From Saccharolobus solfataricus P2 (lineage in GTDB: Archaea; Thermoproteota; Thermoprotei_A; Sulfolobales; Sulfolobaceae), in assembly GCF_000007005.1 (NCBI RefSeq), contig NC_002754.1: 64,000 nucleotides of DNA. One strand, written 5' to 3'. Under the pieces are notes generated by a model. It saw only the letters and a program-made list of their open reading frames with translations. It was not told the DNA's origin and made no database searches. Position numbers and translations under genes: made by a program. Positions 1,826 to 63,436 of the stretch are shown here, one piece after another. Within the stretch, counting starts at the first letter, position 1; each line of letters starts with the position of its first letter.

Positions 1826-2310
1826 GAGGACAATATATTGTTGCCAAGTGGGGTAAGACTAGGGATTCAAAATTCCTCAAGATCGAGATAGTAATGGACA
1901 ATAACGAATTCAACGTGGTAAACGCTGAGGTCACTAGCAACGAGGTTGAAAGTGTAAAAACAGTTAAGGATCTTCAAGATAAGGGAAAGAAGGTCAAGAA
2001 GTTTTATGGAGATAAGGCATATGACGCCAATGAGGTTTACAAGACCGGAGTTGAGGTTGTAGTTCCTCCCAAGAAGAACGCTTCTACTAAACGCCATCTT
2101 GCTAGACGTAAGGCTGTGCGTGAGTTTAGGAAGTTGGGTTATGATCGTTGGAGGGAGGAGAAGGGTTATGGTGTTAGGTGGCGGGTCGAGTCCTTGTTCT
2201 CTGCGGTGAAGCGTACTTTTGGGGAATCGGTTAGACAAGTTTTGCTGGAGTTGAGGCTAAGCTCAAGTTCTGGGCTTACGCGTGGATGGTTAACTTGGCG
2301 AATTCTGTAG
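1826..2310 (+). pseudogene. IS5-family transposase, C-terminal DDE half
   Basis: FYGDKAYD and WRVESLFSAVKR motifs in ORF 1810..2310. Confidence 0.85.
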
Positions 2311-2479
2311 TCGGTAGGGCTCTGGGTATTAGGGTGTAAGCTTGAGAAGAACGTTGAAATAAATATTAATTACTGAAAAATTAGTGTTATACAATATCGT
2401 TTTAATGAGACAAATTGAACGAATCAACAAAGTACTATATATAGAAAAATTAATAATCCATTATTAAAATTAATTATCT

Positions 2480-3973
2480 ATGCAGTCTACTAACCTTCTA
2501 GATGTTGCGACTAACGTTGCCACTCTAATGTTTAGAGCTAACCCTAATGCTAACTTCGTTAGATATCAGTCTCCATCTTTCCAAACTAGTATTTATAGTA
2601 TTTATTTAATGATGAAATTAGGCGATTTCAAATCAAATTTCATCAGTTTTTTCTCTAAATATTTTAGCCAAAATATTATTCTTACTATATGGAACTTAGT
2701 TAATAATTATGCATTGGATGATATAATTAGAATAATATTATATTCTATATTTATTTATACTAATTTACAAAATATTCCCAATACCTATATTCAGAAAATC
2801 AATAATTTCAGTAGTTTTCTATACTTTGCTCCAAAGTCTACAATTAGTGTAACTGAATTCCATGGCGGACTATCAAAATCTAGTAATTATTATTTTCTAA
2901 TTGATGGTAATAATTTACAACATCTTATGGCTTTTGCTGTACCAGGATCAGTACAAAAAATAGGTTTTAAGAATCCTGAGGTACTCTATAATGTCTATAT
3001 CAATGATATTTACGATAAATGTGTAGTCGAGTTCTCTTCATCTAATTCTGGTCCGTTTTCTAATATTGAAGTGTTTCCTGCAATAGATTTAGTACTTCCT
3101 TTCGATTTAAGAAGAGCCTCACGTAAACCTATAACTTATCTTAATAATTTCAATTTTAAATGGATAACTACGAACGAAATGAGTTTCTTGAGAAAACAGT
3201 GGACTCAAGTTTACATGCAAATGATAAATTCAATCAAATCAATCAGTTCTACTCTCAGCTCGTTATTAAAGTATCCTCCAATTTTTCCTAGCCTTTTAAA
3301 TATACAGATGGCAGGAATAAATTTCCCGTTATCATTTCTTATTCCTTACAATATTAACGCAAGACAGAAATCGTTAGAAGGATTAATGAAGGAGATTCAT
3401 CAAATTTGGATTATGTTACAGATAATAACTTACCTTAAAAATCAAGCTAGATTAAAACTATTGAATCTTGATTTTTCCCAGAGCTCCAGCAATCCAATAG
3501 CAATCTTTAGCTGTAATGGTCAAGATTGTTCGTTATGGTATGAGTTCGATATGAATCCACATACTATGTGTAGAGGGCTGCTGTGGAATTTAAATAGTGG
3601 TCCTTCTTGGTTGGAAAACTTTTATCAAAGAGTAACTAAATGTATTAATAGTAGTACAGTAACTTCTATCCCATTAAGGCCAGACATAGTAATATTGAGA
3701 GGAGCTAAGAACTGTCAAGATATATTATCAAATGGGCTAAGCGTAGAGATAGTAATAGAATGCAAAAATCAACAATATAAGTTCTGGAGTAATAATATAA
3801 AAACTCAGATTTTGCCATATAAATGTATTTTCAACCCTAATAAAATGATCCTAGCTTCAATGGAACAGATTCCAAACATAATCAAAACACAATTAAGTAA
3901 TAATGGTGTAATAGCAATAGATTTAGTTGAACCAAATAATAATGGAATAACACAATTGTTAAAATATATTTAG
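2480..3973 (+). CDS. Hypothetical 497-aa protein with C-terminal PD-(D/E)xK nuclease-like motif
   Basis: Long uninterrupted ORF in very AT-rich DNA; LRPDIVI...IVIECKN near the C-terminus. Confidence 0.8.
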   Translation: MQSTNLLDVATNVATLMFRANPNANFVRYQSPSFQTSIYSIYLMMKLGDFKSNFISFFSKYFSQNIILTIWNLVNNYALDDIIRIILYSIFIYTNLQNIPNTYIQKINNFSSFLYFAPKSTISVTEFHGGLSKSSNYYFLIDGNNLQHLMAFAVPGSVQKIGFKNPEVLYNVYINDIYDKCVVEFSSSNSGPFSNIEVFPAIDLVLPFDLRRASRKPITYLNNFNFKWITTNEMSFLRKQWTQVYMQMINSIKSISSTLSSLLKYPPIFPSLLNIQMAGINFPLSFLIPYNINARQKSLEGLMKEIHQIWIMLQIITYLKNQARLKLLNLDFSQSSSNPIAIFSCNGQDCSLWYEFDMNPHTMCRGLLWNLNSGPSWLENFYQRVTKCINSSTVTSIPLRPDIVILRGAKNCQDILSNGLSVEIVIECKNQQYKFWSNNIKTQILPYKCIFNPNKMILASMEQIPNIIKTQLSNNGVIAIDLVEPNNNGITQLLKYI

Positions 3974-7080: not shown

Positions 7081-7608
7081 TTAGACTTCAATTTTATCTA
7101 ATCCTAGGTATGTTATTGCATTAAGATTAAATCTATACTTATTTTCTTCAAAGAACTGTTTAATACAGTTTTTAACGTCTTCTATCGTATAGAATATTTT
7201 ATTGCTCATGTAGTTCTTGAGGGACTTGAAGACCGCCTCAGCCATATTAAGCTCAGGCGAGTAAGGAGGAGTAAACACGGGATGAATACCCTTCCTGCGA
7301 CAAACCTCAAGCGTACCCTTAGTCTTGTGAGGAGAGTAATTATCCATGACCATGTAAACCCTACCACTACCCACACGCCTCTTAAAGTACCTCAAGAAAT
7401 ACTTAACGGATTCAGAGTTAGGCCTTTTAGCAAGAGAAACCACTACTTCGCCGGTCCAAGCGTTTATAGCTAGAATAACATAGATTGAGGAAAAACCTAT
7501 ATTGACGCGCATTACGGGCTTACTGCCAACCTTAGCTAGAACCTTCTTAATTGACGTGCTAATTACTGTCCTACACTCGTCTAGAAAGAACAGTGCCTTT
7601 CTTTCCAA
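7081..7608 (-). CDS. IS630 transposase orfB (DDE domain)
   Basis: FFLDE, VMDN, PPYSPELNMAE motifs. Confidence 0.85.
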   Translation of the reverse strand: MERKALFFLDECRTVISTSIKKVLAKVGSKPVMRVNIGFSSIYVILAINAWTGEVVVSLAKRPNSESVKYFLRYFKRRVGSGRVYMVMDNYSPHKTKGTLEVCRRKGIHPVFTPPYSPELNMAEAVFKSLKNYMSNKIFYTIEDVKNCIKQFFEENKYRFNLNAITYLGLDKIEV

Positions 7609-7613
7609 TTTCT

Positions 7614-8066
7614 TTATTTTTTTTTAAAATCTTCCCACTTGTCCTTTTCTGCTTGGATGTTGGTAGGTCTGGGTTTTACTAGGTTGTATCCTAGTTCGTG
7701 GACTAGTTCGTATAGTCTGGATTTCTTGTATTCTATTCCTTGTTCTTGTAGTGCTATCTTGAGTGTTTTCATTGTCCAATATTCTTGTTGTATTCCGTAT
7801 TTTTGGGGCTTATCTTCCAGAATTTGTTTTATCTTTTCCTCTTCTACTTTTCTGGGTCTTCCTGATCTGGGCTTGTCCTTTAGTCCATCAAGACCTTCTT
7901 TCTTGTACTTGCCAATCCATAATTTTATCGTGGAATAGCCCTTGTTAAGCATTTTCGAAACTTCTTTCTCCGATTTACCGTCAACTACGTGCAGCTTCAC
8001 TGCAAGAATCCTCTCCTTAATTCTCGCGTTCTTCTCTTCCTTATAAGCTTGAACCAAATCTTGCAT
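7614..8066 (-). CDS. IS630 transposase orfA (HTH)
   Basis: HTH segment plus RSGRPRK and WT motif; ends at A9-TAA. Confidence 0.85.
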   Translation of the reverse strand: MQDLVQAYKEEKNARIKERILAVKLHVVDGKSEKEVSKMLNKGYSTIKLWIGKYKKEGLDGLKDKPRSGRPRKVEEEKIKQILEDKPQKYGIQQEYWTMKTLKIALQEQGIEYKKSRLYELVHELGYNLVKPRPTNIQAEKDKWEDFKKK

Positions 8067-23439: not shown

Positions 23440-23494
23440 AGTGCTTGACACCTTTCCGGCCTTTAGGCAGTTCATAGGTTTATGGTTTACCGCC
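23440..23494 (-). mobile_element. Distal part of a putative IS200/IS605 (tnpB) right-end remnant, split by the IS607
   Basis: Rejoined with 25405-25500 reads (minus) ...GGAGCGGGGTGGATGAGAACACCCACTAGCTG...ATGAGGGTGAAGGCGGTAAACCATAAACCTATGAAC, recalled as typical of archaeal IS605/IS1341 tnpB 3' ends. Confidence 0.55.
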
Positions 23495-23555
23495 GTTGCC
23501 AACAGTTTCCGATAAACCGTAAAGTTTATATTATTTTGACACAAACTCTTATACA

Positions 23556-24140
23556 ATGCTAAGACCTAAGGAAGCATGCCAAAGACTAGGAATATCCTAT
23601 GCAACACTTAGAGAATACGTTAAGAAAGGATACATAAAACCAGTTATACTACAGAGCGGAAAATGGAGATTCAGAGAAGAAGACATAGAGAGGCTAATGG
23701 GAATTATTAGAAAAAGAAAAGTAATACTTTACGCTAGAGTATCATCAAACACACAAAAAGACGATCTAGCAAACCAAGTAAAATATCTAGAGGAACAGGT
23801 CAAGGAGTACGACCTCGTAATTACTGACATTGGTTCCGGGTTAAACATGAAGAGAAAGGGGTTCTTGAAGTTGTTGAGAATGATACTGAACAACGAAGTA
23901 TCACGCGTAATAACAGCTTACCCAGACAGACTTGTTAGATTCGGTTTCGAAATCCTAGAGGAAGTGTGCAAAGCACACAACTGTGAAATAGTAGTACTAA
24001 ACCAAGAGGACAAGACACCAGAAGAAGAATTGGTCGAAGACTTAGCCACAATACTAGTCTCATTCAGTGGAAAACTACACGGAATGAGGAGTCAAAAATA
24101 CGAAAAGGTGAAGAAATGTGCTGAAGAACTTAAGAATTAG
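23556..24140 (+). CDS. tnpA: IS607 serine recombinase TnpA
   Basis: N-terminal HTH (LRPKEACQRLGIS), YARVSS catalytic Ser, DIGSGLN, YPDRLVRFG, ELVEDL. Confidence 0.93.
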   Translation: MLRPKEACQRLGISYATLREYVKKGYIKPVILQSGKWRFREEDIERLMGIIRKRKVILYARVSSNTQKDDLANQVKYLEEQVKEYDLVITDIGSGLNMKRKGFLKLLRMILNNEVSRVITAYPDRLVRFGFEILEEVCKAHNCEIVVLNQEDKTPEEELVEDLATILVSFSGKLHGMRSQKYEKVKKCAEELKN

Positions 24141-25392
24141 AAAATTTGAACCGGAAGAGGAATACGTGTACTTCACGTACTCCATCAAGAACGACAAGAG
24201 GGAGAAGAGCAAAGAGCTAATTAGGGAATACACAACACTACTACAGAAAGCAATCGACTACTTGTGGAATTTAACGAAAATACAAGTAAGAAAAAAGAAC
24301 GGTAATTACAAGATAACACTACCGAAGAAGAGGGAGGTGTATAAACCACTTAGGGAAGAGTTGGAGAAGATCAACCACCTTGCATCACACTACGTCGATA
24401 AGGCAATTAATGACGCATTCTCGATCTTGAAGTCGTGGAGGAAAAGGGCCATAAAGGGGAGAGCTTCGATTGAAAAACCAAGGGTGAAGAAGGCTTACGT
24501 TAGGATAAAGACGACTCTGAGGAAGGTTGTTGGGGAAAGCGTTAGAATAACGGTAAGACCTCATGAGTACATCACCTTCTCGTGGAGTAAGTCATGGTTC
24601 TCAAGAAGGGTTAGGGAGTTGGAACTTGGTGAACCTATAATTAAGGAGGAGAAAGTGTATTTGCCATTTCGTTACAAGTTACCCTGGGCAACACCAGTGG
24701 ATTTCTTGGCCATTGACTCCAACCTTTATACTCTAGATGCTTATGATGGTGAGAAATTCGTTACAATCTCACTAAAGCAGTTGTACTCCCTTAAGTACTC
24801 TATGGAGGTGAAGAGGGCTAAGGTGCAATCATTTGCATCAAAGCACACGAAGAGGGGGAGAGAGTTGATGAGGAAGTATTCGCATAGGGAGAGGAATCGC
24901 GTTCTAGATTTTGTTCACAAGTTTGTTAACACTTTGTTGGACTTGTACCCCATGACGTTTTTCGCTGTGGAAAAGCTTAACAAAGAGAGTATGTTTAAGG
25001 ATGCTAATGACTCTCTTTCGAGGAAGATTTCTAGGACTGTTTGGGGGAGTATACACAGAGTGTTGAAGTACAAGGCTCCGCTTTACGGTTCTTTCGTTAA
25101 GGAAGTGAACCCACGCTTTACATCTAGGTCTTGCCCCAGATGTGGGTTTGTATCCCGAAAGGTTGGTAAGACCTTTGAGTGTGAGAGGTGTGGGTTCAAG
25201 TTGGATAGGCAATTGAATGCTTCACTGAATATTTATCTCAAGATGTGCGGATTCCCTCACATCCGTGAAATAGCGCGGGTGTGGGTTGGGGTTATTCCGC
25301 TAATGGGGCGGAGAGGGATGAACGGGTTTCCCCGTGACTTTGGTGAAGCCCAAGGGCTGAGGATTGATATTGAATATCATGAAATCCCATGA
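24118..25392 (+). CDS. tnpB: TnpB RNA-guided endonuclease family protein
   Basis: RuvC-I AID, RuvC-II AVEKL, Zn finger CPRCG...CERCG, RuvC-III region DRQLNASLNI. Confidence 0.92.
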   Translation: MLKNLRIRKFEPEEEYVYFTYSIKNDKREKSKELIREYTTLLQKAIDYLWNLTKIQVRKKNGNYKITLPKKREVYKPLREELEKINHLASHYVDKAINDAFSILKSWRKRAIKGRASIEKPRVKKAYVRIKTTLRKVVGESVRITVRPHEYITFSWSKSWFSRRVRELELGEPIIKEEKVYLPFRYKLPWATPVDFLAIDSNLYTLDAYDGEKFVTISLKQLYSLKYSMEVKRAKVQSFASKHTKRGRELMRKYSHRERNRVLDFVHKFVNTLLDLYPMTFFAVEKLNKESMFKDANDSLSRKISRTVWGSIHRVLKYKAPLYGSFVKEVNPRFTSRSCPRCGFVSRKVGKTFECERCGFKLDRQLNASLNIYLKMCGFPHIREIARVWVGVIPLMGRRGMNGFPRDFGEAQGLRIDIEYHEIP

Positions 25393-25424
25393 AGCCCAAA
25401 CCCCTTCACCCTCATAACCTAACA
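25250..25424 (+). ncRNA. Putative TnpB omegaRNA/reRNA (tnpB 3' end, right end and about 20-nt guide)
   Basis: Position expected for TnpB guide RNAs; GC-rich segment preserved separately at 32758-32860; 5' boundary is a guess. Confidence 0.5.
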
Positions 25425-25500
25425 GCTAGTGGGTGTTCTCATCCACCCCGCTCCATTCATCCAGTAGTAGACCGCGGGTTGGTCTTCAGCGGGTGATTCA
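25405..25500 (-). mobile_element. Proximal part of the putative IS200/IS605 right-end remnant
   Basis: GC-rich island in AT-rich DNA with GTGG...CCAC stem; joins 23440-23494 at CC. Confidence 0.55.
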
Positions 25501-25717
25501 AGTCTCCTTTGCGAATTGTAATTTGTAAATAATGTGGTTGTAAAAATGTTAACATTGATAATTATGTACCTCTACTAGTTAGTCGTCTTCATCTAGTTAA
25601 ATTCGTAGTAATCTTTAAAATAAAGTGGATTCACACTAGATAACTGAATCGCCCGGAAACTTGAATCGCCCAAGTCTCTTAAGTCAGATTTAAATTATTA
25701 TAAGAGCAATTTAACAT

Positions 25718-26443
25718 GTGAGCTTAGAAGAAGAAATTAAAAAAGTACTACTTAATAATCCATCGATATTAGTGGATGTCCTAACTGCTAAACCAGAGAT
25801 AGTTTATCAAGTTTTGGCTAGGCTAACACCATGGCAAAGCCTGGCTACAAAGCAAGATGTCGAAAGACTAGACAAAGAAATAGAAGAGGTCAAGAAAACA
25901 ATGGCTACAAAGCAAGATGTCGAAAGACTAGACAAAGAAATAGAAGAGGTCAAGAAAACAATGGCTACAAAGCAAGATGTCGAAAGACTAGACAAAGAAA
26001 TAGAAGAGGTCAAGAAAACAATGGCTACAAAAGAGGACTTAAAGAGGTTAGAAACTATTATTACTGGTCTTGGGGCTAGATGGGGAATTTTGAATGAGGA
26101 TTCATTTAGGCAAGGGATTAGTGAGATTTTGAGTAATAGTGGTTGGAAAATCTCTAGAGAGGTCCTTTATGATAGGGATGGATATGTTTATGATGAACCA
26201 TCTGATGTTGAATATGATATTGTAGTTAAAGACAGTAGTGTCATACTGGTTGAGATCACTTCCTCTATAAGGAGAGGGGATTTACCAACAATAAAGAAGA
26301 AGAAGGAGTTCTACGAAAAAGTCAAGAATATTAAGGTTAACTTAGTTTACGTTATAACACCCTTTATTCATGACAGATACCCAGAAAGAATCAAGGCAAT
26401 GGCTAAGGATATGGGGATAGAAATAATATACCCCTCAAGTTGA
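25718..26443 (+). CDS. Coiled-coil repeat protein with C-terminal PD-(D/E)xK domain (DUF3782/DUF1626-like)
   Basis: ATKQDVERLDKEIEEVKKTM x3; GARWG, EYDIVV...LVEITSS. Confidence 0.85.
   Translation: MSLEEEIKKVLLNNPSILVDVLTAKPEIVYQVLARLTPWQSLATKQDVERLDKEIEEVKKTMATKQDVERLDKEIEEVKKTMATKQDVERLDKEIEEVKKTMATKEDLKRLETIITGLGARWGILNEDSFRQGISEILSNSGWKISREVLYDRDGYVYDEPSDVEYDIVVKDSSVILVEITSSIRRGDLPTIKKKKEFYEKVKNIKVNLVYVITPFIHDRYPERIKAMAKDMGIEIIYPSS
25842..26031 (+). repeat. Perfect 60-bp tandem repeat, 3 copies plus 10 bp
   Basis: TGGCTACAAAGCAAGATGTCGAAAGACTAGACAAAGAAATAGAAGAGGTCAAGAAAACAA at 25842, 25902, 25962. Confidence 0.97.
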
Positions 26444-26932: not shown

Positions 26933-27982
26933 TAGTATTTCCGGAAAGTTCTTAGACTTCAATTTTATCTAATCCTAGGTATGTTATTGCATTAAGATTA
27001 AATCTATACTTATTTTCTTCAAAGAACTGTTTAATACAGTTTTTAACGTCTTCTATCGTATAGAATATTTTATTGCTCATGTAGTTCTTGAGGGACTTGA
27101 AGACCGCCTCAGCCATATTAAGCTCAGGCGAGTAAGGAGGAGTAAACACGGGATGAATACCCTTCCTGCGACAAACCTCAAGCGTACCCTTAGTCTTGTG
27201 AGGAGAGTAATTATCCATGACCATGTAAACCCTACCACTACCCACACGCCTCTTAAAGTACCTCAAGAAATACTTAACGGATTCAGAGTTAGGCCTTTTA
27301 GCAAGAGAAACCACTACTTCGCCGGTCCAAGCGTTTATAGCTAGAATAACATAGATTGAGGAAAAACCTATATTGACGCGCATTACGGGCTTACTGCCAA
27401 CCTTAGCTAGAACCTTCTTAATTGACGTGCTAATTACTGTCCTACACTCGTCTAGAAAGAACAGTGCCTTTCTTTCCAATTTCTTTATTTTTTTTTAAAA
27501 TCTTCCCACTTGTCCTTTTCTGCTTGGATGTTGGTGGGTCTGGGTTTTACTAGGTTGTATCCTAGTTCGTGGACTAGTTCGTATAGTCTGGATTTCTTGT
27601 ATTCTATTCCTTGTTCTTGTAGTGCTATCTTGAGTGTTTTCATTGTCCAATATTCTTGTTGTATTCCGTATTTTTGGGGCTTATCTTCCAGAATTTGTTT
27701 TATCTTTTCCTCTTCTACTTTTCTGGGTCTTCCTGATCTGGGCTTGTCCTTTAGTCCATCAAGACCTTCTTTCTTGTACTTGCCAATCCACAATTTTATC
27801 GTGGAATAGCCCTTGTTAAGCATTTTCGAAACTTCTTTCTCCGATTTACCATCAACTACGTGCAGCTTCACTGCAAGAATCCTCTCCTTAATTCTCGCGT
27901 TCTTCTCTTCCTTATAAGCTTGAACCAAATCTTGCATAGTTCAATCTGGTAATACTAATCTATAAACTTTTCGGAAACACTA
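26933..27982 (-). mobile_element. ISC1048-like IS630 element, copy 3
   Basis: 1050 bp; GT on both sides; orfA 27485..27937, orfB 26952..27479; A9 tract. Confidence 0.9.
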
Positions 27983-27996
27983 GTGATAGGGGAGGG

Positions 27997-29070
27997 TCAC
28001 TTCACCTCATAAGGTTTATTATTATACCAAACACTCCACACTATCCTAGCCAACTTCCCAGCTAAGGCAGTGTACAGTTTCCTACCCTTCAGTTTATCCT
28101 TGTGGGTTTCGTAGAACTTAAGGAGAGTTGGGTTACGCGAATATTGAGTCTCGGCAAGGAAATAAAACAAGCTACGCAAATACTTGTTACCCCTCTTGGA
28201 GATACCCTTTCTAACCTCAATCCTACCACTCCTCTCAACCACCGGGTCTAAACCGCAATAAGCAACGAAGGATTCAGGTCTTGGGAAGCGCTTAATATCA
28301 CCCACAATCCCAATTATAATCCCAGCTGCCAGTTTCCCTATTCCGGGAATCGTGAGTAACACGTGGTCTTGAGGCACATTACCCTCTATCATTTTCCTCA
28401 CCTCCTTCAACTCTTCTCGCGTTTGAAGTAGTGTTCTCGCTAGGACTTGAATCTCACGTAGTACTGTACCAGTGTATTCCAGTTGATACAGTTTTACGTC
28501 AGAGAAGTCTCCCTTAGAGAACTTCTCCAATCTCTCCTCGCTCAACTTCTCCTCGTCGCTCACGAGGAAGAGAGCTCTCCTTAACCTGTTCTCTTGTTTC
28601 GTTTGCACATCCTTCATGAAGAGGTAGAGTGATACTAACTCTTTTAAGGGGTTGTTAACGTATTCTCTAGCCTTATTTACCATGTTTTCAAGTTTTTCTG
28701 CGTCGTAAAAATCTGTTTTCTTTCCCCTTACGTCCTTTTCTTTCCATAGCAAGGTAGGACTGACTAGTAGGACTTTCACTCCTCTTTCTTTGAAGTATTG
28801 GCAAGGTCTTGTTGAGTATACTCCTGTGGGTTCTATTACGATGATGTTTGGCTTCATGGTTAGTATTTCTTCGTAGCCCTTCTCGTTGTTTGTGAATTTC
28901 CTCACCCTCCCCTTACTTGTTACCAAGTGTTCTTTTGATACGTCTATTCCAATTACCCCTACCCTTGTGTCACACCTATATTCGTGAATATTTTCACAAT
29001 GTTCAGTCCGACTGTAGGGGCTCGTCACGCCCTCGCCCGAAGACTTTGCTTCAATTCCCATCTCGACCAT
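27997..29070 (-). CDS. IS110-family (ISC1190-like) DEDD recombinase/transposase
   Basis: GIDVSK, IEPTG, KKTDFYDA (DEDD); LLTIPGIG, GLDPVVERSG, ISKRGNKYLR; element spans about 27983-29100, 3' non-coding end cut off 14 bp after the stop. Confidence 0.9.
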   Translation of the reverse strand: MVEMGIEAKSSGEGVTSPYSRTEHCENIHEYRCDTRVGVIGIDVSKEHLVTSKGRVRKFTNNEKGYEEILTMKPNIIVIEPTGVYSTRPCQYFKERGVKVLLVSPTLLWKEKDVRGKKTDFYDAEKLENMVNKAREYVNNPLKELVSLYLFMKDVQTKQENRLRRALFLVSDEEKLSEERLEKFSKGDFSDVKLYQLEYTGTVLREIQVLARTLLQTREELKEVRKMIEGNVPQDHVLLTIPGIGKLAAGIIIGIVGDIKRFPRPESFVAYCGLDPVVERSGRIEVRKGISKRGNKYLRSLFYFLAETQYSRNPTLLKFYETHKDKLKGRKLYTALAGKLARIVWSVWYNNKPYEVK

Positions 29071-32394: not shown

Positions 32395-32757
32395 ATCTAA
32401 AATCATATTATTAAAAATAATAGTTTTCCGTTAGTAACTAATTATCGCATATTATATGGTTATTTTACTTAATTATATCAAAATTTATAGAAAATCTCAA
32501 TGTTATAGTAATATTTTTTATAATTATTATCATAAAAAGTCTAAAATTTGTGAAACACCACTGGTTATTGGGTATGACATATATTAAAAATAACATTAAA
32601 TTCAGAGAAAGCTCATTTTATTTATATTATTAGATACATAAAATTGTATTTTGTGTTATCCATGATAAGTGTAATGGAATAAATTCTCGTATATTTAAAA
32701 ATATAATATAATAATCTCAGCTGACTTAATATTTTTAGAAAGATTTTAAGTCAACCG

Positions 32758-32860
32758 AATGGGGCGGAGAAGGATGAACGGAGCAGTCCGTGACTTTGGT
32801 GAAGCCCAAGGGCTGAGGATTGATATTAAATATCATGAAATCCTATGAAGCTTAAACCCC
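32758..32860 (+). repeat. Orphan copy of the IS607 tnpB 3' end/right end (omegaRNA region)
   Basis: 92/103 nt identical to 25302-25404 by manual alignment; no tnpB or tnpA upstream. Confidence 0.85.
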
Positions 32861-34816: not shown

Positions 34817-36031
34817 GACGTTGTCCGATTTGAGCAAAATTAAAAACCATTATAATTACAGCATTTCATATTATACTATTCTTCATTATATTTAAGTATA
34901 AAGAATAATATAATATGTATTAATAAGGGAAAATACAGATAATTGTACAGTTTTGCAATAAAATTTACCATAACAACAAGTAAACACGTAAACGAACCTC
35001 GTTAATTAACGAGTACCTTCGTCCTAATCCTCGTCGAAAGAATTTCGAGATCACGATAGAAGTTAAGGAAGAATACCTCCATAACCACTCCCCTTAAGGT
35101 TGTAGACGAAGCCTTACCTTCCCTAATCTTAACACCACTACCCTCAACCGGAAGTCTAGCACTACCAACATCCTTAACTAAGACGTCCTCCCTAAAAATC
35201 CAAGCCCTATCGGCCATTAACTTAACGTTTATCAAATGAAAAGGCTAGATCACTCAAATTGGCCAATCCAACCTTGAAGTCCCTAACGAAATTAGTCCTC
35301 CTTTCCACAGATTACAGACCTTTAAACCCGAAGTAGGACTTACCGTGCTTCCTACCCAAACTACCCTTATACTTCCTAAAGGCTGTGAAAGTTCTTGAGC
35401 TTGGAAGTAGTATAACCCATGAGGAGAAAAACGTCATTGAACCCCATCTCCTTAAGGTCAAGTGAGATCTTCTCAAGACCGTTTTGAAGACTCCTCTTTC
35501 CGGGGTAGGCCTCACGGAAGAATATGTCAATTATGTGGTAGTACTCGAACCTATCGTTTTTTTCTCTCCCAACTTCAAGTTCAAAGCCCTTTTCCCTATA
35601 CTCGCTGATCACCTTGTCCAAAGCCTTGTTTAACTCATCCATTAGTGTTGTTCTCATTGTCTCGCCCTCTTGAATAACTGTTTGTTGAAGTTTCTTGTAG
35701 AAGAAGAATACTGTGCTCTTTGGTGGAACTTTCCCGCCCAAGAAGTCCATAAACCTCTTACTGTCCCTAATTTCTCCCTCCAAGTTATTCCAAGAGATGT
35801 CGAAAACGAACTTGATTAGGAGGACTTTGAGGAGTGAGATGACGTTCCACTTGGGCTTCTTGGAGTAAAGAGACTTAAGCTTACTCCTAAACGTTTCCCA
35901 AGGGAAGGATTTATCCACCTTGAGTAAGAGGTCCTTTTCAGTTGAAATTGCCTTTACCATAATATTATCTCATTCTAATTTCTTATTAATATTACTCATG
36001 AATTGCCATTTTAATCAACTTGGATAACGTC
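34817..36031 (-). mobile_element. ISC1212-like element, copy 2, frameshifted
   Basis: 1215 bp; same TIRs as 609-1821; flanks ACAT / ACGT differ; ORF pieces 35376..35960 and 35002..35235. Confidence 0.87.
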
Positions 36032-61997: not shown

Positions 61998-63436
61998 CAG
62001 TGGTGTTTCACCAAATTATTTCATTTGAAAGATATAATATTAGTCCTTTCAAAAAGAGATTGATATAGAGAAAAACAATAAAATTATTATGAAACATAAC
62101 ATGTTAAAATAATTTGCAAAAAATATAGCGTACAATTCTAATAATAAGAGGAGAATTCTGAATTTTTCTCACGTGGTGAAAACGACGTGCATAGTCTCCT
62201 CTGAACACCGAGAAAGTTAGAGAAGCTTGACGAATGAATCGAAGGACAAAACCTTCTTACACGTGGACTTGAAGTTAAAGAGAAGATGATTCACTAGATT
62301 CCACGCAGAATCCAGAACCGTGTAATAGAGGAACAAGAAGATCTTATTACTCAACTTCCTAACATACCTTATCCTTGCCTTCCTAACCTTAAAACCCTCC
62401 TCAACTTGCCACCTCAACCTATAGAGTTCAGCCAGTTCATAGGGATCTCCCTCGAAGTTCGTTACGAACATGAAGTGCCTCGGCTTCCCCTTAACGTAAA
62501 CCACATCGTAATAATAAAGCCCTTCAAATTCCAAGACCCTATACGCAACGTAAACCTTGTCCTTAACCTCATATCTCTTCTCAACTAATGGAACGTTAGA
62601 TAGTTCCTTGAATCCCTTCAAGTTCGACTTTCCTCTCACAATGGTCTTCACGGGCATTTCCTTGATGACCCCTAGGTTCAAGAATCCGGCGTCAGCTACA
62701 ACGTAATCTATTTCCATGTATTGGCTTACTTCCCTCACGCTCCTGAGTAGGAACTGTGATGGACTGTCGCTTCTCAAATCTGCTACCTCCACTAGGAGGG
62801 GTAACCTTAAGGGATATACGAGGTCCAAGGATCTCATCTTTACTCCTTTTCTCTTCCAGTTGTAGAGTAGAAAGCCCTCTGCTTTTTCTTGTTCCTTTTC
62901 TCCCACGGTTAATCCGGTCTCATCTACAGCGACTACGTTGATCTCTCCCTTTACTTCTCTGTAGATTGGGTAGAACTTGAAGGTTCTCTGACCTTTACTA
63001 ATTACTTTCTCGCCTCGTCTTACTACCTTCAAGTAGTATTTTCCTCTGTTTCCGGTTAGCAAGGATGGTGCTGCTTTCACTATTTCCGGGTCTAGATCTT
63101 GAGAGATAACGTTAATATTGTTTGTTGCTAAAGTTATAGCGAGGGACTTCAGCTCCGTTTTGGGTAATATCATGGTTTGCATAACGGAGTTATGGAGTCC
63201 CTCGCTTTAACCTTTTCTTGTTCATCTCGTCCTTCCACCTACTTTCCTCTATTGATAATACTAGACAAATGGTATTACTCTTTATATATAAACTCGTTTT
63301 CTGTTAGTTTCTTCAACAAATATGAAAATTTTTTGCTTCTTGTGTTGAAATAAGCCGATTTTTCTAACTCCGCTCTGATATTTTTCTCTTCCATAGAAAT
63401 TGTATCATTTTGAGTAAAATTGGTGAAACACCACTG
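61998..63436 (-). mobile_element. ISC1439-like element, complete
   Basis: Exactly 1439 bp; TIRs CAGTGGTGTTTCACCAA / TTGGTGAAACACCACTG; 9-bp TSD GTTCTTTCC (61989-61997, 63437-63445). Confidence 0.93.
62217..63182 (-). CDS. ISH3-family DDE transposase
   Basis: VAVDET, VADAGF, YRLRWQVEEGFK. Confidence 0.92.
   Translation of the reverse strand: MQTMILPKTELKSLAITLATNNINVISQDLDPEIVKAAPSLLTGNRGKYYLKVVRRGEKVISKGQRTFKFYPIYREVKGEINVVAVDETGLTVGEKEQEKAEGFLLYNWKRKGVKMRSLDLVYPLRLPLLVEVADLRSDSPSQFLLRSVREVSQYMEIDYVVADAGFLNLGVIKEMPVKTIVRGKSNLKGFKELSNVPLVEKRYEVKDKVYVAYRVLEFEGLYYYDVVYVKGKPRHFMFVTNFEGDPYELAELYRLRWQVEEGFKVRKARIRYVRKLSNKIFLFLYYTVLDSAWNLVNHLLFNFKSTCKKVLSFDSFVKLL

Follow-up and report, generated by a model that had tools for sequence, protein, structure and literature searches.

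The IS607-family element ISC1904 within the decayed right end of another TnpB element in Saccharolobus solfataricus: probably an ordinary nested insertion

In a 64,000-nucleotide stretch of Saccharolobus solfataricus P2 DNA (NC_002754.1; hereafter the window) a complete copy of the IS607-family insertion sequence ISC1904, which encodes a serine transposase (TnpA) and an RNA-guided endonuclease (TnpB), interrupts a short GC-rich island that resembles the right end of a TnpB element of a different family. We consider it probable (roughly 0.8) that this is an ordinary nested insertion, and that the flank's origin in another TnpB element is incidental. Neither copy number nor guide match, recurrence or host content supports the proposal, made in an earlier note on this DNA, that the two transposon families are in conflict or that one homes into the other. 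The value of the locus is descriptive, as a clear illustration of how an archaeal IS607 element is built. Beyond what has been published on ISC1904, it adds a survey-based prediction of the target and target-adjacent motif (TAM) as GCC, with self and non-self told apart at position -3, and a structural model of the right-end RNA that is supported by covariation.

ISC1904: genes, ends and target motif

The element occupies positions 23495..25404 of the window on the plus strand (1910 bp, counted with one CC). Its tnpA gene (23556..24140, plus strand) encodes an N-terminal MerR-type helix-turn-helix domain and a C-terminal resolvase-type catalytic domain, with Pfam matches to PF00239 (Resolvase), PF12728 and PF13411, and scores 218 bits against a cut-off of 110 for the NCBIfam equivalog NF033518 ('IS607 family transposase'). 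Because TnpA residues 54-194 are 100% identical to PDB entry 3ILX, 'First ORF in transposon ISC1904', we identify the element as ISC1904 itself, a well-known IS607-family element of S. solfataricus. The tnpB gene (24118..25392, plus strand; 424 aa) starts inside the 3' end of tnpA, an overlap of the IS607 type, and its product matches Pfam PF01385 (OrfB_IS605) and PF07282 (TNB) as well as NCBIfam NF040570 ('RNA-guided endonuclease TnpB family protein', 123 bits, cut-off 100). Alignment to ISDra2 TnpB (8EXA/8H1J) covers RuvC-II, RuvC-III and the zinc finger and places E285 (motif AVEKL), D363 (LDRQLNAS) and the two CxxC pairs (CPRC/CERC); D200 is assigned from the motif AIDSN alone. The RuvC D-E-D triad and the zinc finger are present, and because of this alignment and these motifs TnpB is apparently intact.

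The ends of the element were mapped onto 80 related loci obtained by a metagenome scan with TnpB. All copies begin GT(T/A)G... and finish ...AAACCCC, and similarity ceases at exactly those bases. Forty-one independent left flanks place the left end at the step from GCC to GT(T/A)G..., and the right end is set by 58 independent metagenomic right flanks together with an orphan copy of the right end elsewhere in the window (32756-32860). A CC core lies at both junctions and there are neither terminal inverted repeats nor a target duplication, as in IS607 elements, and the boundaries given in the earlier note, with a single CC, prove to be exact. The published description of ISC1904 in S. solfataricus P2 (Boocock & Rice 2013, PMC4058570) gives the same two-ORF (open reading frame) layout, a length of ~1.9 kb and a shared crossover dinucleotide, likewise without inverted repeats or target duplication, and we see no essential difference. 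The same insertion is found in LT549890.1 (an S. solfataricus chromosome, near 2.73 Mb) and in CP050869.1. S. solfataricus has ~11 copies of ISC1904; exact protein look-up revealed no second identical copy of TnpA or TnpB, and three genome records carry the locus. An exact-protein look-up of both neighbour genes returned only insertion-carrying strains and no empty site, and a junction 22-mer representing the empty site had no match in the contigs of representative genomes.

The left junction is preceded by GCC (23492..23494, plus strand), the predicted core of the TAM, of which the last two bases are also common to the right end. Position -3 is G and position -2 is C in all 41 left flanks, position -1 is C in 40 of the 41 and position -5 is A or T in 38; the 58 right flanks are unconstrained except for a preference for T/A at +1. 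CC is the crossover dinucleotide shared by both junctions, since the GCC left flanks and the ...CCCC right ends both end in CC. At position -3, G stands in the target where the element's own ..CCCC right end has C. The invariant GCC adjoining the left end could be imposed by TnpA, by TnpB or by both, and by analogy with other IS607 elements we predict the TAM to be (W)NGCC.

The analogy is with the IS607 'IStron' of Clostridium botulinum, which has a GG core, a TGGG target that is also the TAM and a TCGG right end, and in which position -3 separates self from non-self and the natural target of TnpB is the scarless donor joint (Zedaveinyte et al., bioRxiv 10.1101/2023.11.20.567912). Shared between the two systems would be a serine transposase, a core dinucleotide, a TAM equal to the TnpA target motif, a right end that departs from the TAM only at -3 and so spares the element self-cutting, a guide formed by the flank adjoining the right end, and the donor joint as target. 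ISC1904 differs in having a CC core with GCC and CCCC rather than a GG core with TGGG and TCGG, in its archaeal host, and in lacking the group I intron of the clostridial element.

The right end is predicted to encode a structured omegaRNA scaffold of ~156 nt (25249..25404, plus strand), as expected of an omegaRNA, which overlaps the 3' end of tnpB and stops at the element boundary. The length is defined by a closing helix in which GGGTTT near 25249 pairs with the terminal AAACCC, and conservation of the right end ceases at ...AAACCCC. RNAalifold applied to 42 distinct homologous right ends gave 56 pairs, five of them with compensatory double changes, for example at columns 231:242 (AU in 25 sequences, UA in 17) and 225:249 (AU in 15, GC in 13). 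By the rule that holds for TnpB and IS607 elements the guide of this copy would be TTCACCCTCATAACCTAACA, templated by the first 20 nt of the right flank (25405..25424, plus strand). The suggestion that the guide is the DNA directly downstream of the right end, together with the 5' context named for it, fits the rule established by experiment for the clostridial element, with GCC in the target as against CCCC in the element.

The flanking relic

Removal of ISC1904 rejoins 23444-23494 with 25405-~25512 into one GC-rich segment, as had been noticed from the sequence, that is, an island of ~160 nt with 52% GC. It sits in a gene-free spacer of 568 nt, the remainder of which is 28% GC, and it is non-coding in all frames. 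By blastn the island is 78-84% identical in DNA to the last ~120 nt of tnpB genes of the ISC1476/ISSis2 type (E 1e-17 to 1e-29), and tblastn matches it to the 3' ends of the same genes (E 6e-15). In a 7.3-Gb plasmid database it matches, at E 5e-20, the 3' ends of genes annotated as TnpB on pMGB1, pHVE14 and virus SMV1, and an island 20-mer has one match in 185,579 GTDB species-representative genomes, at the 3' end of the gene for a 370-aa TnpB in a Methanomethylicota metagenome-assembled genome (MAG). The minus-strand frame of the island reads QPAVYYWMNGAGWMRTPTSC*VMRVKAVNHKPMNCLKAG, for comparison with the family C-terminus QP(A/V)VYRWTNGAGW..PTSYEVM(K/R)(M/V)KAVNHKPMNRPKGTLAL*, so that the peptide motif QP.VY.W.NGAGW...VM..KAVNHKPMN is common to both. 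We judge this resemblance to be far beyond chance, and take the island to be the minus-strand right-end region of an IS200/IS605-family tnpB element, where an omegaRNA would be encoded; the likeness to IS605/IS1341 right ends to which the earlier note had pointed is thus borne out. Because the island and the family right ends align in one colinear run across the junction, without a gap (...GTGAA, then beyond the insertion point GGCGGTAAACC...), the ISC1904 insertion was precise.

The family is large and strongly conserved, with 70-90% protein identity across Sulfolobales, Thermoproteales, Desulfurococcales and Methanomethylicota, and its members, named 'ISC1476 family transposase' or 'ISSis2 family' in the sources, occur for example on pHVE14, pMGB1, SMV1 and the S. 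islandicus chromosome. In Sulfolobales the tnpB gene usually adjoins one for a Y1 TnpA. Derivation of the island from ISC1904 itself was considered and rejected, as BLAST against ISC1904's own right end gave only 7-mers. A link of the ISC1476/ISSis2-type family to the characterised SisTnpB1 (TAM TTTAA) is not claimed, as the left-end alignment has no shared TTTAA directly upstream. Rfam gave nothing for the island in a scan of the whole window, in one of the region with a permissive cut-off or in scans of the two halves divided exactly at the insertion point, and a tRNA scan found none.

What survives of the older element is damaged. Its terminal part (23444..23494, minus strand) retains remains of '...AVNHKPMN...' and a decayed terminal motif ending near 23444; its upstream part (25405..25512, minus strand) is interrupted by a frameshift and an in-frame stop and retains remains of 'LK.QPAVYYWMNGAGWMRTPTSC*VMRVK'. 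The right-end motif of the family, ...CCCTCGCCCTTTAGGGCGGGGAGGAGGTCAG, is present only as the decayed version CTGCCTAAAGGCCGGAAAGGTGTCAAG, in which a gap of ~19 nt in the terminal hairpin motif points to a deletion. Judged by the island terminus near 23444 (...GGAAAGGTGTCAAG, against ...GGAGGAGGTCAG in the family) the relic does appear to reach the true element terminus. At the other side, similarity to the family starts at ~25500-25512, and beyond this the minus strand continues upstream as AT-rich DNA without coding sequence. Neither a tnpB body nor a tnpA or left end of the older element was found there, nor any other tnpB in the window. A complete ISC1476/ISSis2-type element has tnpB, with or without a Y1 tnpA, and a left end, whereas the island has only ~160 nt, and on this evidence we regard it as a 5'-truncated, mutated, dead orphan, a relic rather than a member element.

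When seven right ends of the family are folded to a consensus, all of them have an intact 12-bp long-range helix, GTGGTCTACCGC with GGCGGTAAACCAC, although with seven sequences the covariation support is weak. The ISC1904 insertion point lies exactly at the base of the 3' arm of this helix, and a 1.9-kb insertion in mid-scaffold would, in this model, abolish any RNA that the island encoded.

A different view of the island is that it was a self-standing small-RNA gene formed by an IS605-type right end, in which case the arrival of ISC1904 would have inactivated a regulatory or guide RNA that had been domesticated. The model for such a gene is RNA-257 1-4, which are orphan fragments of the ISC1904 distal end in S. 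solfataricus intergenic DNA and are transcribed and regulatory (Maertens et al. 2013, PMC3674436). Like them, the island is a lone fragment of the distal end of a TnpB element in intergenic DNA; they derive from ISC1904, whereas the island comes from another family and is interrupted. The relic starts at about the start of the conserved structured region of its family and reaches the element terminus, it is closely preceded on the minus strand by an AT-rich box-A-like sequence, and a circular non-coding RNA 'within ISC1476' has been reported in P2. However, the loss of ~19 nt of the terminal hairpin goes with several broken pairs relative to the family fold, and a homologous orphan was not found in any other of the 185,579 representative genomes. 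We consider a domesticated RNA gene very unlikely.

In the sequence of events that we favour, that of an ordinary nested insertion, an older ISC1476/ISSis2-type IS200/IS605 element once stood here on the minus strand, of which the last ~160 nt survive in mutated form. ISC1904 later entered this relic, presumably by way of its serine transposase, for which little beyond the GCC seen at the mapped boundary seems to be needed, with crossover at CC and no duplication, as the chemistry described for IS607 elements suggests. Chance suffices for a landing in the island, since TnpA needs GCC and four of the six GCC sites of the 568-nt spacer lie in the 159-nt island; the GC-rich relic would simply hold most of the usable sites in an AT-rich, gene-free spacer. 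Transcription of the right end, the scaffold of which is supported by covariation, would run on into the flank and yield the guide. Scarless excision as a double-stranded DNA circle is known for IS607 elements (PMC4058570; bioRxiv 10.1101/2023.11.20.567912), and from published experiments on other IS607 and IS605 elements we would expect the guide to direct TnpB to the scarless empty site (..CCGCC joined to TTCACC..) and its cleavage there after excision by TnpA, whereupon recombination with a sister copy could restore the element. Self would be told from non-self by the base at -3. By analogy, this mechanism is probably best regarded as the standard IS607 TnpA/TnpB retention system.

The guide and the other family

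According to the earlier note the insertion programs ISC1904 TnpB against every similar intact right end. Put at its strongest, the insertion would have re-armed this nuclease against intact ISC1476/ISSis2 right ends, with either an RNA-guided conflict or homing through break repair as the outcome; if true, this would mean that one transposon naturally directs its guide RNA against a different transposon family, which might be a step on the way by which selfish homing turns into defence. Relative to the relic codons '...C*VMRVK', and to a conserved stretch at the 3' end of the family's tnpB, the guide is antisense. It is unique within the window, and the junction 22-mer already mentioned, which comprises 9 nt of the TAM side and 13 nt of the guide, has no match in the 185,579 representative genomes. 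When compared with the 20-nt guide, all 16 sampled family right ends have between four and seven mismatches: four in the P0096/P0121 lineage (positions 11, 15, 17 and 19) and in S. islandicus chromosomal copies (5, 12, 17 and 19), six in pHVE14 (5, 6, 12, 14, 17 and 19), and seven in pMGB1, SMV1, S. shibatae and the MAG (5, 6, 7, 12, 15, 17 and 19). The copies associated with S. solfataricus itself, those of pMGB1 and SMV1, are among the most divergent, with three of their mismatches at positions 5-7.

Host content and recurrence point the same way. No intact family member on the S. solfataricus chromosome was listed in protein searches, one of them confined to the C-terminal tail, although such a member could be concealed by the clustering at 90% identity; an ISC1476 on the P2 chromosome is mentioned in the literature. 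The homology arms that homing would have to use are only ~50 and ~108 nt, at ~80% identity. By blastn and tblastn none of the 57 other independent right-flank sites, with their left flanks where recovered, lies in an ISC1476-type end. The relic itself is a single dead orphan rather than an element. A second insertion near a convergent TnpB end, at locus L022, was rejected because the terminus of that TnpB element is 262 nt away. In a 1.4-kb viral contig (L104, 340-358) there is a 19-nt exact match to GCC plus guide, which was likewise rejected because it lacks flanking similarity, lies inside an unrelated ORF and is one of ~2 such matches expected by chance in a collection of that size.

Several observations nevertheless weigh against the reading of an incidental flank. 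None of the 15 Sulfolobales copies in the sample of family right ends departs from GTTTACCGCC over the 10 nt of the TAM side (the sixteenth copy, from the MAG, has ACC instead of GCC), an invariance that is explained by the double constraint of the K-A-V-N-H codons and the RNA helix. The P0096/P0121 lineage matches the guide perfectly at positions 1-10 and at 16 of 20 positions overall, and for a thermophilic Sulfolobus TnpB of another family block mismatches in 1-10 abolish activity whereas mismatches in 11-20 are tolerated. The comparison of near-matches covers the 16 sampled family right ends. The P0121 protein, a 434-aa ISC1476/ISSis2-type TnpB, is 100% identical in five Sulfolobaceae genomes (S. 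tengchongensis, Metallosphaera sp. and others; L099-L103), and therefore seems to have spread horizontally very recently and to be spreading now. We give only a slim chance to weak cross-recognition by this guide of incoming family elements such as P0121. It is just as improbable that this copy, by entering the best-conserved stretch of the family right ends, acquired a guide that still recognises P0121-type elements and so provides an accidental RNA-guided immunity against a rival TnpB transposon, or a homing route into it, and the wider conflict or homing between the families we likewise hold to be most improbable.

Also to be set against our preferred explanation are two features of the copy itself. 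At position -5 the window site has C in place of the A or T of 38 of the 41 sites, and in the window scaffold two of the six pairs that form the closing helix are broken; for these two reasons activity of this ISC1904 copy must be regarded as unproven. It could accordingly be argued that this copy is a fixed and inactive fossil, and its guide without any consequence. The exact TnpA and TnpB sequences are confined to this locus, the insertion is common to all three genome records that carry them, and in published RNA-seq there was no excess of reads at the 3' end of another ISC1904 orfB. On the other hand, neither ORF is truncated, each retains its catalytic motifs, and the ends are intact. We think a fossil unlikely, and continue to favour the ordinary nested insertion of an element with the standard IS607 retention system.

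Other right ends and neighbouring genes

The orphan copy at 32756-32860 (plus strand) corresponds to the last ~105 nt of ISC1904, to which it is 89% identical, and likewise finishes in ...AAACCCC. A left end and ORFs are missing, and an AT-rich box-A-like sequence lies 15-35 nt upstream. In present terms it would be an orphan omegaRNA scaffold with its own 'guide' (TAAACTAAATTGG...), and it is the same kind of object as RNA-257 1-4 (PMC3674436). Orphan and MITE-like (miniature inverted-repeat transposable element-like) ISC1904 right ends are common in hot-spring Sulfolobales. The MITE-like derivatives in hot-spring metagenomes consist of a left end of ~40 nt joined to a right end of ~120-150 nt that contains the RNA scaffold; they include L080-L085, L087, L091 and L093 (250-267 bp), L078/L079 (320 bp), L053 (276 bp) and L071 (677 bp), have GCC on the left of each, and represent at least eight independent sites. 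Such derivatives would be protein-less carriers of guide RNAs, mobilisable and usable by full-length copies.

Two ISC1904-type copies, L030 (678-877) and L036 (660-859), have in common a 200-nt, very GC-rich and structured left flank next to unrelated right flanks, and L026 and L093 likewise share left flanks but not right flanks. No Rfam family or similarity to TnpB was found for these shared flanks, which could reflect recombination between IS copies or a repeated element of another kind. On pMGB1 (L095, NC_021914.1) two TnpB elements of different TnpB families stand in tandem (632-1957 and 2145-3570); their proteins are ~42% identical, as judged through L022, the TnpB of which is 78% identical to the second pMGB1 TnpB. 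Both finish in the same 37-nt terminal motif, GGGAACCCTCGCCCTT(T/C)AGGGCGGGGAGGAGGTCAG, which suggests that they share one recognition hairpin for a Y1 transposase.

The gene adjoining the relic (25718-26443, plus strand) encodes a DUF3782 and a PD-(D/E)XK nuclease domain, together with a 20-residue unit (ATKQDVERLDKEIEEVKKTM) that is present as three tandem copies, all of them perfect. The window is otherwise rich in insertion sequences: a two-ORF IS630-type element, with a helix-turn-helix ORF and a DDE_3 ORF, is present in two copies (7081-8066 and 26952-27937, minus strand), and there are an IS110-type transposase at 27997-29070 (minus strand), a DUF772 transposase fragment at 35376-35960 and a DDE_Tnp_1 transposase at 62217-63182.

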